Positions 8,645-32,070 of a stretch of 64,000 bases of DNA are shown here, piece after piece. The stretch covers positions 89,032,001-89,096,000 of the forward strand of contig NW_026262734.1 of the NCBI RefSeq assembly GCF_021869535.1. The letters run 5' to 3'. The notes below the pieces were generated by a model, which saw nothing but the letters and a program-made list of their open reading frames with translations, had not been told where the DNA came from and made no database searches. A program made the translations under genes and the position numbers. Source of the stretch: Mytilus californianus (taxonomy: Eukaryota). Position 1 is the first letter of the stretch. Every line of letters begins with the position of its first letter.

Positions 8645-9247
8645 TGTTGGTTATGACGCTCTCTAAATATTAAATAAATGATTGTATTTTTACATAGATT
8701 TATTGTATATTGTTGTTATTGTTTTCACTACAAAACGTCGTGATTACTGTGTGCATGTTCCAATAAATGAGCATAGACAAAATCGTTTGATTATGTTTGA
8801 GTTACAGGTTTTAAAAAGTATTAATCTATTCGATATAGATCCGTAGTGTATGGGCAGTCAAAAAGATTTTAACATTCAAAGTCAGCAGTTTTGTCTTTGT
8901 CATTAACTTTTTTCGTTAAATATTCTGTCTTGTTTGCTTTTTTCCTTTGTTTTATTTGTCTTGTACCATGCCAATGTGTGACTACTTCCTTATTGTCTAT
9001 AACAGAAGCTATATTTCTAATATGTGTTTGCTGTCATCATACAAGTGTATTGTATATGTATGGAGAGAACTTAATATAACTTGCGTCAAAACATTTTGCT
9101 TGATTATTGCAATAAAATATTATTAAGATAAAAAATAATATAGGCATGTCAATTGTGACGTTCCCATTTAATGGTCAAACAATAATTGTAATATGGCAGT
9201 AAGGTTTGGATATTTAATGCATAATGTACATGTGACTTACACCAGCA

Positions 9248-9371
9248 GTGTAACTGAGACTGTTGTCGCTTCGCTCAGATATGTTTTGATCTTGTGGAAC
9301 AATTAAAAAAGTGTAACTGAGACTGCTGTCACTTCGCTCAGATATGTTTTGATCTTGTGGAACAATTAAAA
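9248..9371. repeat. Tandem duplication of a 63-bp unit
   Basis: gtgtaactgagactg.tgtc.cttcgctcagatatgttttgatcttgtggaacaattaaaa starts at 9248 and at 9311. Confidence 0.9.
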
Positions 9372-9795
9372 TGTATTCTTGTGTGTTTCAATACATACTA
9401 CTGTTATAAGGTTACTACTGTTTTGTTTTCAATTTCTGTTTAATCTGAAGTTAAAATATTTAATGAATAAAACAGTATAACGTATAGAAACTGTAAACAT
9501 GCTTGACGATGATCATCATCATAGGTTGAAGCGCCATGTTCTAGAACTATTGAAAGTTAAATTTTAAATCTATACTATTAAACGAGAAGACCTCATTTTG
9601 TGTGTCGCTTCTCTTCCTTCCCCAATGAATTAATCATCATGCCTATAGGTACCATGCATAGTCGCATTTGTCATCCATTCTTATGATTATTCAGTTTGGG
9701 TTATTTTGGGAGAAAAAGAAAGAAAAAGGCGTCCGGATATTGTTTCCGTCATCAGACCAACATTTAAGTCATACCCAAGACTTCCGATTTTAAAC

Positions 9796-10013
9796 TTTAA
9801 AAGAGGGGGTAAAGGGTTATTTTCGTGCAACGTGTTTTGCCACTTTTTATTTCACGTGCAGCCGTGAAAAAGGTTCGTTATTCACCGTGTTTCTTGAAAT
9901 CGATAAAAAGATCAATGTGCAAGAAATTTTTAATTGTTCGCTCATTGTGAAATGGCAATTTTATTTCGCGTTCTCAGTCCGTGCAGATACCCCCCTTTAC
10001 TCCCCTCTTTAAA
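9796..10013. mobile_element. Small MITE-like element with about 22-bp imperfect TIRs
   Basis: tttaaaagagggggtaaaggg at the left and ccctttactcccctctttaaa at the right. Confidence 0.5.
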
Positions 10014-19314: not shown

Positions 19315-20445
19315 TTAATGCCCCCCCCCCCCTCCCTTCGCAACAAAGACGCAGTTGTTGGGGCCATATAGTTTTACCCTTATCCGTCATTCCATCATTC
19401 TGTCATACCGTCATTCCGCAACGAACAGTTATACCGACTTTTTTTCTAAACGCCTTCACATATTGAGCTGATATTTATAACGTAAGTCTACTATGATGGG
19501 CAACAGATCGAGAATACGTTTCGTTCCGGTCCGCTGATTTTTGTCGAAATTACGGGCTTTGGACTGTATAATTTCATGAATATAGTAGTTATACGGACTT
19601 TTTTACTAAACGCCTTCACATATTTAGCTTATTTTAGAATGTGAATCTATTATGATGAGTTACAAATCAAATTTACGCTTGGTTCCGCTCCGCTGCTTTT
19701 CGCTGAAACAAAAGTCTTTGAACTTTGAACATTTTGTGAAAATAACAGTTATACGGACTCTTTTTCTAAATGCCTTTACATGTTGATATAAAAATAAGGA
19801 GATGTGGTATGATTGCCAATGAGACAACTATCCACCAAAGTTCAATTGAAATGGATCAGATGTAAGCAATTATAGGCAACCGTACGGCTTCAACAATGAG
19901 AAAAACCTATACCGTATGGTTAGCTATAAAAGGCCCCGACATGAAAAATATGAAACAATCCAATTGAGAAAACTAACGGCCTAATTTATAACAAAACAAT
20001 TTACGAAAAACAAATATGACAAACATGCACCAATGACAACCACTGAACTACAGGCTCCTGACTTGGGACAGTCACATAAAGAATGTTGCGCGGTTAAACA
20101 TGTTTTCGTTTTAAAACTAGATGTGTCGAAACGACACGAATGGCCGTTCTTTCAAATAAAGCATGAAGCTATTTTTAGGAGCAGAAATTTGAGAATCAAA
20201 GTTTGTTTGACTGTTATTGTCACGAAATTTTCAAAGTCCAATGTCTGTAATTTCGTGAAAAATCAGGTGGGCGGAATCAAACGTAAATTCGATCTGTAAC
20301 TCATTATAGTAGACTCACATACTAAAAAACGGCTCAATATGTGAAGGCGATTAGAAAAAAAAACCGTATAACTGTTCGTTGCGGAATTTGGGAATGACGG
20401 AATAGCAGAATAATGGATAAGGGTAAAACTATATAGGGCAATAAA
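19315..20445. mobile_element. Two inward-facing Helentron-like heads with 160-bp satellite-like units, interrupted by a retroelement tail
   Basis: tatagttttacccttatcc.tcattc...ccgcaacgaacagttatac (19367-19435) is inverted at 20364-20440. The unit agttatac.gactt recurs at 19427, 19587 and 19747. Confidence 0.7.
19792..20105 (-). mobile_element. 5'-truncated 3' tail of the Naiad-like retroelement family (gattgcc subfamily)
   Basis: ataaggagatgtggtatgattgccaatgagacaac...gacaaccactgaactacaggctcctgacttgggacag matches 20941-21240 and the reverse complement of 31760-32070. Confidence 0.7.
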
Positions 20446-21837
20446 AAGAAAAATCATACACATGCCGAATCTTAATAGAATAACAAAGGATATGGGGTAT
20501 CCATCCATGACACAAAATTAGTTCACGCACAGCAAGAACACAAAAAAAAATACACCAAAGGAACATTATACCGTTCTGTTTTACCGATATTTCTAATCAT
20601 TATACATTTCATTTCAAATCATCTCAATACATATCTGAATATATGAGCACATTAATCTCCATATCGCAGCCAAATAGTACAAATACATTTGTGAATTAAA
20701 GAATGTGATTAAATTCATACGACATTTTAAATATCATTATATAACAAAAAATGTAATTTCATGATGTCATGTAGTTGTATAAATGTTTGTTTGGTTCTGT
20801 ACATGTACTTTTCAGTTAGGTTGACGGGCTATTTTTGTCAATATTTAAGATGTATTTGCGAAAAATAATACATTATGTGTTACATTGAAGATGCATTGTT
20901 CAATGAACAGAGGTAAAGTGAACATCATCCACCAAATATAAATAAGAAGATATGGTATGAGTGCCAATGAGACAAACTCTCCTTCTAAGTCACAATGTGT
21001 AAAAAGTAAACAATTATAGGTCAAGGTACGGCCTTGAACACGGAGCCTTGGTTCACACCGAACAGCAAGCTATAGATGGTCCCAAAATGACTTGTGCAAA
21101 ACAATTCAAACAGGAAAACCAACGGTCTAATCTATAAACAAAAAAACGAGAAAGGAGAAACACTGATGAACCACACCAACAAACGACAACCACTGAACAA
21201 CAGGCTCCTGACTTAGGACAGTTGCATACAAATGCAGCAGGTTAAAACGTTTTAACCGGCGCCAACCTTCACCCTAACCTGAAACAGTAGTGTAACATTA
21301 CACCATAAAAAGACACACTATGAAATATCAATTGAAATGGCTTAACTCGATGAAAAAGACATATAAACAAAACACAAGTAAACATACACTGAACGAATAT
21401 GTTTGATCTATGACACAATATAAATACAATATTAGTAAAAAAAGATGTAGAACAATGTCAAAGGTCAAAAAGACAACTTTAACCTGGGACAAAACGGCGT
21501 TAAATAAAGTAACGTACACAGGTAAATTTAGATATAATGATAATGTTGTCAGGAGTACGGAAACGATTTTTCCAAAATAAATTAATTTGTTGTTCACAGT
21601 GCGAGTACAGACGTGAAAATTTATCGTCATACTAAATACTGATCAAAGGTGGTACATAGTAAAAATAGTGAGACGAGATATACATGTAATACAAAATAAG
21701 TAAACATTGAATAACAGATATGCATTACAAATTGTGTCAAGAGGTCAAATTAACACGAAAGTACGATTTGAGAGTACTCTCAGTTACTGAAAGCTAGTTA
21801 AAAGTCAAAAACAATTAATAATAAAAAAATCATGCAT

Positions 21838-21905
21838 CAGAGACTAAAATCAGTAAAAACACATCCCAGGGATTTAGTGTTTTAACGCCATGGACAGTCA
21901 AAGAA
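21838..21905 (-). promoter_or_regulatory. SECIS-like element (form 2) in the 3' UTR of the Naiad-like ORF
   Basis: ATGG-cgttaaaacact-AAA-tccctggga-tgtgtttttac-TGAT. Ten-position helix II with one mismatch, apical AAA 12 nt from the core, tcc/gga mini-helix, gact/agtc helix I. About 160 nt downstream of the stop. Core reads ATGG, not canonical ATGA. Confidence 0.7.
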
Positions 21906-22052
21906 GACATGACTTGTGCAATGCCAAAATAAAAGTATCGACAGGCAGTAAGATAGTTCGGATTTAACCTTATAATACATATGTATCATGCTATATATAG
22001 ATAAAGCAATGTATTTATACATTCCAAAAACCCATTCGAAAAGAAGATAAAT

Positions 22053-25000
22053 TTAGTTATGTTTTAATTTGTTGATGACCAAATCGATGTTAGTGCCAAT
22101 GTAAACAATATTCAAAGATCTTATTACAACATTAAAAAGATAACCTTTACTAATAAGTTTGTTTAAAGGTTCGATGAGTTTACACGGATCACATAATGAT
22201 TTCCGCGCTTTTAGTAATATTACCGTAAAATTTAGGATGTGAAATACCGTTTTTAATAAGTTTTCTACAGGTACAGCCAAATTTACTAATCAAATCTTTG
22301 TATCTATGAAAGAATTTAGTAAATGTTTTCAGTAATTTATGGTAACGAAATCCCTGACTTAATAATTTACCAGTGATGCATTGATTACGTTCGTTAAAAT
22401 CTATGACATCACTACACACACAGGCATAACGAACGAGTTGGGATATATAAACACCGTATGATGGAGCCAAAGGAACATCGCCGTCTAAAAAAGGAAAATT
22501 AACAATAGGGAATGCAAAACTCTTTTGTCGTAAATTTAAGTATGGAGTTTCCCTTTAGAAATTGAAATGTCTTAATCTAGAAAAGGACAACTACTGCTGT
22601 TTATGTTAGATTTATTCAAAGTAAGTTCCTTTGAGTAAATTTCGGTAGTATATTAAGAGAACTCTGGATGATTTAACGAAAAATATCATCAAGATAACGG
22701 TAGGTATTGTTGAATGTGTCCAAATATATAACAATGACGTTTGGCCATAAACTGTGATTCATAGCAATACAGGAATAAATCTGCTATTAAAGGGGCGCAA
22801 TTAGTGCCCATAGGAATACCTACTATACACTTTATCGCCGAAACGTACATATATGTTGTCCAGGAGAAAATTTAAAGCTTCAATCATATATCCACACTTC
22901 CAGCAAGTGTATCTAGCATACTTTCCTTTTTCGTTACAGAAAAGGCTTTAAACGATTTACAGCAAATAAATTTGCAATGAGATTTTTCAAAAGACAATTT
23001 AATTAAATTTGAAAACTTTTTCTTAATAAGATTGTGTGGAAGTGTAGTGTAGAGAATAGAAAAATCATAACTGTCAACAGAATTAAAAGGCACGTATTTT
23101 ATCTAAAACCTCTAAAGAATTTTTAACAAACCAAAAATGATTAATACCATTATTTTCATAAACTTTATTACAAAAGTTAATAACAAGTTCTTTGATAGTA
23201 GTTAGGGAGGTAGTTAGAAGCACTGATAGATTAGTAGTAGAACAGTTACTAGATGCGGAGATGAAACGAAATTTAAATGGTTGTTTGTGTGATTTAGGTA
23301 ACCAGTACATAGTCGGGACTTGCAAATGTTCGGAAGAGTCTTTAAGCTGGGTAGTGGCAGTGATATGCTTGTTTACAATTTGACTCTCTGTGGAGCGTAC
23401 GGACCTGAATGTAGAAGAATTGATAATTTCGTTTTGGAGAACTTCCGTGAAGTATATGCGTCACACCACTACTACATTATTGGCTGCTTTGTCTGCCGGT
23501 ACGAACACAAACCGCTTTGCGAGTACTTGGAGTTTATTTTTTATTCTAGAAATGGGTATATAATGAACCCTATTATTGGTTTCAGAATTGTTTTGAAAAT
23601 GAGATAAACAAATATCAACAATATTCATAATTTTATTCATATAACTGTCAAGAGATTTTTTTATCAAATTTTTCGCGTTTACACCAATTTTTACAGTAGG
23701 CAGATAGAACGTCTTTAATGACCTCACGACACTGTTTCCAATCTTTAATGGATGGAGGACGATATTTAGGTCCTTTCTTAAAAAAAGTTTTTACCTCACG
23801 GTCTTCAACGATGTTGAGGTCTCCTGTAATGACATAACCATAGGGAACATATCTAAAACTAGATGTTTCACAGTCCCAAGTGGAAGGAGCAGTATATTCT
23901 ATATTGACGTCTGATGTTACTGACGTATAATTCAAAATCAAACTTCTGCTGGTTTCTTTGCACGAATACGAAAAAATAGGTGGTTCTGTATTATCAAAAT
24001 ATGGAGGTATTTGGCTATGGATGGTAGAGTCATTGAATATACTAGATAAATTAATAAAATCAATACATCTATTTATATATTTTAATTTAAGAAAATGCCG
24101 TTTATAATTTTCAGGTTTATCGATACTAGGAAACAGCCTGTGATGACAAAAGGCTGTAATAATACGGGTGTATTCATACAACGGGCTGAACATTGGAATT
24201 TTATCACACTCCAGAAAAATATCATGTAGTTTACTTATTGGTATATGAGCAAGTTTGCATAATAATTGATGTCTACCATTATTTTTGATTATAGATCACA
24301 GATTAGCAAGTGTATAATTTATACGATGTTTAATACGTAGATTACGGTTTGTACGTTTACCATGAGACTTATTATTTCTTAGACGTATGTCGACAATATT
24401 CATGACATCGATAGAAGTTTTAGATATGTTCCCCATGTCCCAACATTTTGTCATTGAGACCGAGAGGATAAGCTGTTTGAAGTATTTCATCCAAAATAGT
24501 TCGCGAACTTCACGGGATTTTTCAAATTGTTTGTGTGATTGTCCTGGTTGTTTCTAAACGGTTTCAAGTGGTTGGAATTTTATAAATTTTAGATTGTGAT
24601 TATGCTTATCTAAATGTTGGTATATCAAACTTTTGAATTTTGTAGGTCTTTGAAAGTGGTAAAGGTGCTCTTGTGTTCTTCTGTAATATTCTCGTACCAT
24701 CTGTCCCACATATTGAATACCACACTTAGGCTGAGTTCAAGTTACCAGATAAATAAGATTTTGGGTTTTTCAGGTAATGTCACAGGAAAAGGAGAGCGAA
24801 AAAGCTCTCCCGTTCACTGTTGACCTTGGCTAACAGTATTGTGTGAAGTTAATTTGAAACAGGTCAGTCATTTTCTGGCATTGCACTGAAAAATATGTGG
24901 ATATCCACGTGCAATTTTGTTTAACAATCTAGCTGCAGAGTTATTGCCTCCTTTGACCCAATTGTACACAGTGCTAAATGTAGCAGGATAATTTTGATAG

Positions 25001-25134
25001 GCTGCTGTAGAATTTATATTAGAAATACAATTTTTAAAGCACGTGGATCTTCTAGAAGTAGGATTGTTAAGACTTCCACTTAAGGTGCTAAGGGCCGTCA
25101 CGAACTTTCTCTCAGGGGACAGCTTTTGCTCCAT
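22053..25134 (-). pseudogene. Decayed EN-RT ORF of the Naiad-like element; candidate selenoprotein ORF
   Basis: ORF-track fragments join in frame across TGA codons at 24868-24870, 24770-24772, 24737-24739, 24296-24298 and 23461-23463. Several frameshifts and one in-frame TAG (about 24554) show this copy is inactive. Confidence 0.85.
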
Positions 25135-25792
25135 GATGACGGGTCATACTGACATTGAGATGAATAACAGCAACTGTTCCTTTGCTTTTTCCATTTGCTA
25201 ATTGTGATTTTATATCAAATATTGAATATCATATCTTTTCTATCACAAAATGATAACGGTACTAAATTAAATTGTCTGTTCGTTTTGGGTTTATTTTTTA
25301 GAAAGGGGGTGGGGGCGCACTTCGATCCTTTTTGTGGTAGGGGTCATCAGCTGAGAAATTAAGTACACCACCCTTTTCATGTTTTTTAGATACTAAAAAG
25401 AACATACCTTTTCACTATTATTTTTTTGACAAAAAGACCGATAGCCATATTATGCCATTTCACGGAGAGTAAAAGTAAGTTTGTCAAATATCTAATGCAT
25501 TTAGGGTTGTTGGTTTAATTGTATACAATCAGCAACCTTATCATGTATCAAGTTTTAATTTTTTAACCTTATCACATATAATGAAGCTTTATGAAGAATA
25601 TATAATAAGTGAGCCGGTCGAGGTTTGTTTTGTTTGAAGTTTTCACTACTCACCAGAACATGCAGAACGTATTCTTGAAAAATTCCTGTCAAAATTAACC
25701 ATTGTAATATGATTAATACATGTACCTGTATATACTAGTACATTTAAATATCTTGATTGATTGATTTTTCTTGCAAAACATCCAATTGCTAA

Positions 25793-28295: not shown

Positions 28296-28352
28296 TAAAA
28301 TTTTGTACCAGACGCGCGTTTCGTCTACACAAAAAAAAACTCATCAGTTACT
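28296..28352 (-). ncRNA. Degenerate minimal type I hammerhead ribozyme motif
   Basis: Minus strand: CTGATGA-gtt...gac-GAAA-cgcgc-GTC-tgg. Core intact, short palindromic stem III, GUC cleavage triplet. Stem I pairs poorly. Confidence 0.6.
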
Positions 28353-28800: not shown

Positions 28801-29762
28801 ATATAAGAAGATGGGATATGAGTGCCAATGAGACAACTCTCCATTCAAGTCACAATTTGTAAAAGTAAACCATTATAGGTCAAAGTACGGCCTTCAACAC
28901 GGAGCCTTGGCTCACACCGAACAGCAAGCTATAAAAGCCCCCAAAAGTGACTAGTGTAATCAGGAAAACCAACGGTTTAATCTATATAAAAACGAGAAAC
29001 GAGAAACACTTATGAACCACATCAACAAACGACAACCACTGAACATCAGGTTCCTAATTTATGACAGGTGCAAACAAATGCAGCGGGTTTAAACGTTTTA
29101 ATAGGCGCCAACCTTCGCCCAAACCTAAAACAACAGTGTAACATCACAACATAGAAAGACTCACTATAAGATATCAATTGCAATGGCTTAACTCAATCAA
29201 AAGACATATAAACAAGAATTAGTGAACATACACTGAACGAATAAATTTGATCTATGACACAATGTAGATACAAAATTAATAAAACAAGGGGGTTAGATGT
29301 AAAACAATATCAGAAAGACAACCATAACCTTGGACAAAATGCCGCCAACAAAAAAACGTACACAGGTAAATACAAATAATTTTGTTGTAAGGTATACATG
29401 GAGTACGGAAATATTTTTACAAAATAAATAATTTTGTTGTTCATAGTACGAGAACAGAAGTGAAAATTTATTGTCATACTAAACAATTACCAAAGGTGGT
29501 AAATATTTGAAATAGTGAGACGATATAAAATACTAAATAAGTAAACATTAAATAAAAAAAAAAATACATTACCAAATGTATCAACAGGTCAAATACCACG
29601 AAAGTACGATTTGAGAGTACTCGCAGTTACTGAAAACTAGTTAAAAACCAAAATTATTAGTAATAGAAAATCATGCATCAGAGACTAGAATCAACTATAA
29701 CACATCCCAGGGATTTAGTGTTTTAACGTCATGGACAGTCAGAGAAAACATGACTTGTGCAA
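28801..29762 (-). mobile_element. ORF-less 3' UTR/tail copy of the Naiad-like element
   Basis: Colinear with 20941-21920 along its length. Similarity ends just after gacttgtgca. Confidence 0.9.
29680..29745 (-). promoter_or_regulatory. SECIS-like element (form 2) with canonical ATGA_AAA_GA core
   Basis: ATGA-cgttaaaacact-AAA-tccctggga-tgtgttatagt-TGAT. Helix II is kept through G.U pairs where copy 1 has Watson-Crick pairs. Confidence 0.75.
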
Positions 29763-30271: not shown

Positions 30272-30562
30272 TGTTAGGGTGAAGGTTGGCGCCTGTTAAA
30301 ACCTTTAAACCCGCTGCATATGTTTGCACCTATCCTAAGTCAGGTGTTTCTTGTTTCTCGTTTTTTATATAGATTAGACAGTTGGGTTTCCTGTTTGTAT
30401 TGTTTACACTAGTCATTTTGGGGCCCGTTATAGCTTGCTGTTCGGTGTGATCCAAGGCTCCGTGTTGAAGGCCGTACTTTGACCTATAATTGTTTACTTT
30501 TTACACATTGTGACTTGAATGGAGAGTTGTCTCATTGACACTCATACCACATCTTCTTATTT
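30272..30562 (+). mobile_element. Short 3' tail of the Naiad-like family, inverted relative to 28801-29100
   Basis: ...ggctccgtgttgaaggccgtactttgacctataat...ctcataccacatcttcttatt is the reverse complement of the 28801 region. Confidence 0.85.
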
Positions 30563-30769
30563 CTAAATAAATCATTTTGACGGATACCAAAAAAAACTGC
30601 ATGAGTCATATACCTAAACTAAACATGATGAAAAGCAAGAAATAAGGGGGAAATGTTTGTTAATGCCTGTTGAACTCTTTAGTACATATTTTTACAAAAA
30701 AATACAGATTAAGAAATAATTGCAGACGAATAACATAAAGGAATCATAATATTCATTCACAAAAGTGAG

Positions 30770-31394: not shown

Positions 31395-32070
31395 TACATC
31401 CAGTCGATACTGTTTACTTATATTCTGGCATTGCACAAGGTCATGCGTTTCTCAGACTGTTTATGGCGTCTTTACACTAAATCCGTTGAATGTGTAATGA
31501 TTGATACTTTAGTCTGGGAGAACACAATCATTTATTAGTGATACAGTAATTGGCTTTGAACTAGCTGTCAGAGACTGCATGTACTCTCAGATCTGTACTG
31601 TGTGTCTTTTTTGTTGTGGGTGGTGTATTAATTTCTTGTACATTATAGTCTATGCTTTTATTAGCTGATTTTTCTGCTTTGTATCGATCTGATGAGTAAA
31701 GCTCTTTCCAACTGATATTTATAGTTCTTATGTTGTACTGTTACATCATTGTCCAAGGTTAAGGGGAGGGTATGGCTCCAGCAAGCATGTTTAACCCCGC
31801 CACATTCTTTATGCGCCTGTCCCAAGTCAGGCACCTGTAGTTTAGTGGTTGTCGTTTGTTCAGGTCTGTCATATTTGTTTTTCGTAAATTGTTTTGTCAT
31901 AAATTAGGCCGTCGTTTGTTTTTTCAAATGAATTGTTTCACATGTCGTGGTCTTTTATAGCTGAATATACAGTTTTCTCATTCCGTATGGTTGTCTATAA
32001 TTGCTAACACCCACGTCATTTGAACTTTGGCGGATAGTTGTATCATTGGCAATCATACCACATCTCCTTA
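31395..32070 (+). mobile_element. 3' UTR/tail of a second Naiad-like subfamily
   Basis: gtcgatact...tggcattgcacaaggtcatg and tttgaactagctgtcag match the 3' UTR at 21760-21945 (minus strand). Ends in attggcaatcataccacatctccttatt. Confidence 0.75.
31451..31518 (+). promoter_or_regulatory. SECIS-like element, diverged copy
   Basis: cagact..ATGG-cgtctttacact-AAA-tccgttgaa-tgtgtaatgat-TGAT..agtctg. Helix II sequence differs from copies 1 and 2 but pairing is preserved. Confidence 0.65.

Follow-up and report, generated by a model that had tools for sequence, protein, structure and literature searches.

Transposons that encode selenocysteine (Sec) are known from a single paper, which described the Naiads, a type of Penelope-like element (PLE), and reported four Sec-coding families, two from clams and two from spiders (Craig et al. 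2021, PMC8557442). Each of these families carries three or four UGA codons and a Sec insertion sequence (SECIS) 1-21 nt after the stop, and all four have a UGA before the GIY-YIG domain and another at the Cys eight residues after the DKA motif (DKA+8) (PMC8557442). We found no further paper on Sec-coding transposons in the literature searched, from 2021 on. Here we describe a high-copy Naiad-type retrotransposon family of a Mytilus-type mussel, starting from one copy of about 4.1 kb on the minus strand of a 64,000-nt stretch of Mytilus californianus DNA (contig NW_026262734.1, positions 89,032,001 to 89,096,000; hereafter the window). We put at roughly 0.85 the probability that the five UGA codons of this family are read as Sec by way of a SECIS, giving a full endonuclease-reverse transcriptase (RT) protein, and that the window copy is a dead member of it.

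The element is a Naiad-type PLE, with an N-terminal GIY-YIG, a CX2-5CxxC motif, a K/R-rich block, a CxC motif, DKA and then the RT. The original prediction, made from the window alone, had proposed this identity, and the domain order agrees with it. We base the assignment on the Pfam matches of relatives (GIY-YIG N-terminal, RVT_1 downstream) together with the K/R-rich block, CxC and DKA. In one frame, the GIY/YVG core lies at codons ~60-78, a K/R-rich run near codons 184-205 between endonuclease and RT, and the RT beyond codon ~490; full-length relatives that align end to end have PF01541 at the N-terminus and RVT_1 downstream. The CX2-5CxxC motif, upstream of GIY-YIG, reads C-x4-U-x2-C in the family (U stands for an in-frame UGA) and CxxCxxC or Cx4CxxC in relatives. 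Between its GIY strand and its YVG strand the family has U-x4-C, the cysteine pair of the CCHH motif. At codon 353 the CxC motif is UxC in the family, WDC in the window and CxC in 9/9 relatives. DKA takes the place of the usual PLE DKG: the window and its sister copies have PADKAANN, and the relatives DKA.

The nearest described systems are the clam families Naiad_Mmer (Mercenaria mercenaria) and Naiad_Scon (Sinonovacula constricta). They match the mussel family in element type, domain order, bivalve host and a SECIS in the 3′ untranslated region (UTR), SECIS-like in the mussel, and they share with it three UGA sites, namely the Cys that precedes GIY-YIG, the first of the two CCHH cysteines and DKA+8. 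With five UGAs, the mussel family exceeds the three or four of the clams: it also has UGA at the first Cys of CxC and at the second Cys of CX2-5CxxC. Its hairpin lies ~145 nt after the stop instead of 1-21 nt, its host is a mytilid mussel and not a heterodont clam, and its RT6(D) site is free of UGA. The spider families Naiad_Sdum and Naiad_Smim (PMC8557442) are also multi-Sec, both with UGA before GIY and at DKA+8, and Naiad_Sdum shares with the mussel family the UGA at the second Cys of CX2-5CxxC. They rely, however, on the first Cys of CX2-5CxxC in place of the CCHH Cys; the IFD is missing, the hosts are arthropods, and there is no Sec at CxC.

The mussel family extends, and does not discover, a phenomenon published in 2021 for clams and spiders. 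Judged from sequence, what it would add to the four known families is a mytilid host, a protein with five Sec sites and Sec at the first Cys of CxC, a position reported in no family. The second Cys of CX2-5CxxC would likewise be new as a Sec site in a bivalve, having been described in one spider family only.

To define the UGA codons, we read 30 copies, and later eight more places (38 inspected), from a genome of 1.65 Gb in which a first look gave ~8,900-9,900 candidate places, of which ~40 were scored per search. Codons were tallied per site across copies, using natural copies as frame rulers (main ruler 974 codons). At exactly five internal codons, 30% or more of the 30 copies have a stop, and at each of these codons the stop is TGA (Table 1); the eight additional places give the same five-TGA picture. 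The remaining stops are scattered private singletons (53 TAA, 19 TGA and 10 TAG), at frequencies that reflect mutational opportunity. Five nonsense changes made at random would all be TGA at Cys codons with a chance of ~1.4e-6, which bears out the earlier view that the pattern is unlikely to come from random decay.

The five TGAs listed in the original prediction, which begin on the minus strand at 24870, 24772, 24739, 24298 and 23463, are all present, and protein-like sequence goes on past each, in changing frames. Four of them (24870, 24772, 24739 and 23463) are indeed fixed, with TGA in 85-100% of the covering copies. The TGA at 24298 is private to the window copy, and RNA reads have the family letter at 24297 in 42/42 cases (among the best 40 of 674 variant rows). 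The fifth family site is instead the CxC codon, where the window has TGG-GAC-TGT (23878-23870), as first reported; the suspicion that this TGG was once TGA proved right, TGA being the family state and TGG private. We also considered whether the first TGA merely overlaps an ATG out of frame (the window reads ATGACT) and rejected this, most copies having GTGACT with the TGA frame open upstream.

Next, we searched the UGA-free endonuclease-linker piece against 1.84 billion representative proteins and obtained 1,278 relatives, of which nine have a length of 650-1105 aa. In an alignment of these nine with a natural copy whose breaks were written as X, all five UGA sites fell on Cys in 8-9 of the 9 full-length Cys-type Naiads. 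The four fixed TGAs of the original prediction do therefore sit at Cys positions. Cys-type Naiads, among them the oyster extended Penelope-2_CGi and the library proteins P0048, P0052 and P0129, have the same GIY-YIG (PF01541), CX2-5CxxC, CxC, DKA and RT and align end to end; they differ in having Cys at all five positions, where recoding is not needed.

Unbroken relatives are found outside the inspected copies. The nearest library protein, 90% identical, lies on metagenome contigs from three samples (L032-L034), in which 1001 codons are open from an ATG, with five TGAs at the same sites, no TAA or TAG inside, 28 ordinary Cys codons and a terminal TAA. In lineages 39-48% identical, the called genes end at a TGA on the CxC codon in 6/6 cases looked up, and where the contig continues there is TGA at DKA+8 and at both GIY-region sites. 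One such divergent contig (L056) has Cys at the CX2-5CxxC site and four TGAs in a frame that is otherwise open over 964 codons. With UGA taken as sense, an otherwise uninterrupted ORF is thus found in L032-L034 and L056; the window copy and all 30 genomic copies lack one.

We compared 150 representative relatives at the CxC codon: 56 stop immediately before it, 14 encode Cys and 6 encode Trp. In a tree of the relatives, the stop state at this codon is clustered yet interleaved with Cys, and at least three changes are needed. A 60% identical protein (P0003) has Cys at CxC, and its ORF ends exactly at the DKA+8 codon, which suggests that close lineages exchange Cys and Sec at individual sites. 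Two relatives of the RT piece (P0259 and P0281, 52-55% identical, 445-477 aa) are filed under 'Candidatus Thiodiazotropha' metagenome-assembled genomes. They probably stem from the DNA of lucinid clam hosts that was binned with their symbionts, and they hint at Sec-type Naiads in lucinids.

A SECIS-like hairpin begins ~145 nt past the TAA of the family. It has an AUGA core, a 10-bp helix II, an AAA loop motif, a 3′ GA and the right spacings, and it folds into a SECIS shape; the core ATGA is kept in 27/29 copies. At the homologous place, the Rfam model SECIS_1 matches 9/10 other copies with 25-33.3 bits, the gathering score being 35 bits. When the UTR alone was searched, SECIS_1 was the only or the best Rfam match (E 2.4e-4 and 2.3e-3). 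For the window copy alone, Rfam gave no SECIS, because the core is mutated to AUGG and not because the hairpin is absent. A divergent lineage has its own SECIS-like match, overlapping its stop codon as in the published families.

The window also contains a second, 5′-truncated tail of a related Naiad (28803-29762, minus strand), 82% identical to the tail of the studied element, with a SECIS_1 match at 29681-29742 (29.8 bits) and an intact ATGA core. Further tail fragments of related Naiads lie at 31415-31946 (+), 30273-30565 (+) and 19788-20106 (-). In the hairpin at 31452-31518, swaps of A-U to U-A and of U-A to C-G leave helix II paired, and the core is altered to ATGG, just as in the studied copy.

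The host genome has two tRNA-Sec genes, at C132:34106546 and C1:48003347, which score 79.6 and 77 bits (Rfam cut-off 47). Elsewhere in the genome (G000:C154:27755505-27807263), there is a tandem tRNA-like array of at least 50 units with a period of 728 bp; each unit scores 42.8 bits to the tRNA-Sec model, just under the cut-off.

The family is also transcribed. In a stranded RNA run, reads cover the whole ORF with a ~30:1 strand bias, which corresponds to sense transcripts under the usual library type. Almost all of these reads are only 85-95% like the window and therefore come from other copies of the family. The locus is present in sequencing runs of two organisms and in runs labelled mollusc metagenome. 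RefSeq entries of Mytilus edulis and M. californianus named "uncharacterized protein" fall into one cluster with the RT piece at 90% identity or more, in agreement with the mussel host that the original prediction had considered.

Based on these data, we propose that a single ORF of ~1000 codons encodes an N-terminal GIY-YIG endonuclease, a linker with the K/R-rich block and CxC, and the RT, and that in the family this ORF is interrupted by five UGAs only, each in place of a conserved Cys. The hairpin past the TAA would recruit the host selenocysteine machinery; all five UGAs would then be decoded as Sec, and a full-length endonuclease-RT product would result. Sec insertion itself, and any benefit from Sec, we infer. 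A parallel is selenoprotein P (SELENOP), the best-known multi-Sec protein, which also has multiple UGAs in one ORF and processive decoding through a 3′ UTR SECIS, as presumed for the mussel family, and which is especially Sec-rich in bivalves (cited in PMC8557442). SELENOP differs in being a host gene of unrelated sequence, usually with two SECIS; the mussel element is a transposon in thousands of copies, with one SECIS found.

Several observations weigh against Sec coding in this family. The SECIS scores of 25-33 bits stay below the Rfam gathering score, the z-scores of the hairpin fold are modest (-1.1 and -2.6), its covariation rests on one divergent copy, and a single SECIS was found for five UGAs. 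None of the 38 inspected genome places is intact and the genome copies are 6-9% diverged from the unbroken relative; the family may therefore be inactive now in the mussel genome. Could the UGAs be real signals that are not read as Sec? They might be leaky stops served by near-cognate tRNAs, or terminators that yield a separate endonuclease, linker and RT, with a hairpin that is no SECIS. The sub-threshold scores would suit this, as would the separate pieces of 277 and 462 aa that gene callers predict, and the processive decoding of five UGAs from one SECIS is demanding. Nevertheless, a generic stop or readthrough signal has no need to fall five times exactly on invariant Cys codons. The hairpin with its AUGA core, AAA loop motif, 3′ GA and right spacings, the SECIS-like element at the stop of a divergent lineage and the host tRNA-Sec also speak against it, and we regard such a use of the UGAs as improbable. 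It is hardly credible that the TGAs arose as functionless nonsense mutations in a dead master copy and were passed on to every descendant. Every inspected genome copy is degraded, and shared ancestry alone would make the mutations of a master look fixed. However, random stops would all be TGA at Cys codons with the very small chance given above, natural contigs keep frames of 1001 and 964 codons without other stops, the TGAs persist among lineages that share 39-48% of residues, and a dead master could not alone yield thousands of copies.

If the five UGAs are read as Sec, as we favour, the mussel family could still have acquired them independently of the clam families, by convergent Cys-to-Sec changes, and not from a shared Sec-using ancestor. 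The two sites absent from the clam families (first Cys of CxC and second Cys of CX2-5CxxC) would agree with this, and so would the interleaving of Cys and stop at CxC in the tree and the 60% identical relative that has Cys at CxC and ends at DKA+8. All three clam-type positions named above are nonetheless shared, and these appear to fit common ancestry with the clam lineage at least as well. We consider a separate origin rather unlikely.

We lean towards the view that Sec-coding Naiads are not four isolated families but a large and diverse bivalve clade that includes mytilids, with Sec at CxC, repeated exchange of Cys and Sec, and a mussel family with five Sec and thousands of SECIS-bearing tails. 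Our data indicate a far wider spread of the trait than has been published. One consequence concerns annotation, which cuts Sec-Naiads at each UGA into pieces such as the "uncharacterized protein" entries mentioned above. Another is that host genes could readily obtain SECIS from the thousands of 5′-truncated tails, each with a SECIS-like hairpin.

The window copy itself is dead and has no function. Relative to the family, it has 13 indels and five private stops (TAG 24556, TGA 24298 and TAA 22655, 22574 and 22538), its Sec codon at CxC has become Trp, and its SECIS core has changed from AUGA to AUGG. The original prediction had already called it frameshifted and dead, and rightly so. Two details of that account need correction: the frameshift that separates the first TGA from the second comes from 5 nt inserted near 24832 and not from 1 nt, and the copy has four non-TGA stops on the family frame, not one.

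Table 1. Positions of the Naiad copy and its features in the window, listed in the direction of the element.
Feature	Position	Strand	Basis or remark
Naiad element copy	20934-25068	-	blastn against 29 other genomic copies
Unique flank, first 22 codons of the originally predicted ORF, including ATG 25134	25069-25134	-	open by chance
Extra 75-nt (25-codon) N-terminal block	24941-25015	-	alignment of the 5′ region; absent from the main family
UGA 1, codon 24	24868-24870	-	second Cys of CX2-5CxxC; TGA in 21/23 copies; Cys in 8/9 relatives
UGA 2, codon 55	24770-24772	-	Cys just before the GIY strand; TGA in 22/26 copies, 2 CGA, 2 TAA; Cys in 9/9
UGA 3, codon 66	24737-24739	-	first Cys of the CCHH pair in the GIY-YIG core (U-x4-C, then YVG); TGA in 26/26; Cys in 9/9
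Private nonsense TGA, no Sec site	24296-24298	-	family TTA (Leu) in 29/30 copies
Former UGA 4, codon 353	23876-23878	-	first Cys of CxC; TGA in 28/30; TGG (Trp) in the window only; Cys in 9/9
DKA motif, Naiad form of the PLE DKG	23485-23493	-	translation, within PADKAANNVVVV
UGA 5, codon 491	23461-23463	-	Cys eight residues after DKA; TGA in 30/30; Cys in 9/9
RT part of the ORF	22056-23460	-	broken here by nine deletions and three private TAA
True stop of the family, TAA	22053-22055	-	TAA in 29/30 copies
Decayed SECIS-like hairpin, 3′ UTR	21838-21903	-	core AUGA to AUGG at 21891-21888
3′ tail	20934-21837	-	homology limits and read-depth table

The limits of the element were drawn by blastn against 29 other genomic copies, which places the end of shared homology at ~25068-25070 on the 5′ side and ~20934-20942 on the 3′ side. 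In at least 39 further copies, the shared sequence begins at window position 25068. Copies are ~88-91% identical to the window copy, and the sequence beyond the TAA amounts to roughly 1.1 kb. The ATG at 25134, from which the original prediction started its ORF, belongs to unique flanking DNA, since copy homology stops 66 nt short of it; window 25069-25400 has no match at any other place in the genome. In the main family a separate ATG lies ~30 nt upstream of the equivalent point. The 75-nt block is common to the copies that start at 25068 and is a feature of the subfamily to which the window copy belongs.

Candidate places for the family number in the thousands, from which our sample of 30 copies and eight places was read. 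Many copies are 5′-truncated, three loci (L018, L023 and L029) have additional adjoining tail pieces, and the window copy is without a pLTR. Over the last ~300 nt (20934-21215), DNA and RNA depth is 10-100 times that of the ORF, and numerous reads pass into dissimilar sequence at 20975 and 21221. This part is therefore shared with a far commoner repeat or with very many truncated copies.

Domain searches with the window copy itself gave little. Its RT part matches RVT_1 weakly, full-length relatives matching the same model, and the best that Pfam gave for its three UGA-bounded pieces was RVT_1 at E 0.02. The RT piece had no match among PDB sequences. One of the Cys-type Naiads (P0129, 1105 aa) carries a C-terminal match to ubiquitin hydrolase (PF00443), a chimeric gene model or a fusion.

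Naiads are described as being without canonical hammerhead ribozymes (Craig et al. 2021, PMC8557442). Accordingly, neither hammerhead nor twister was found inside the element at E up to 10 in the window copy, ten other copies and a 1.3-kb tail, and a ribozyme in the tail was rejected. One weak hammerhead match lies in the upstream flank of another copy (L006), outside the element. Finally, a type I hammerhead match (RF00163, 27.1 bits, E 0.021) is present in the window at 28305-28351 on the minus strand, ~450 nt past the 3′ end of the second Naiad tail, and may belong to an adjoining canonical PLE.

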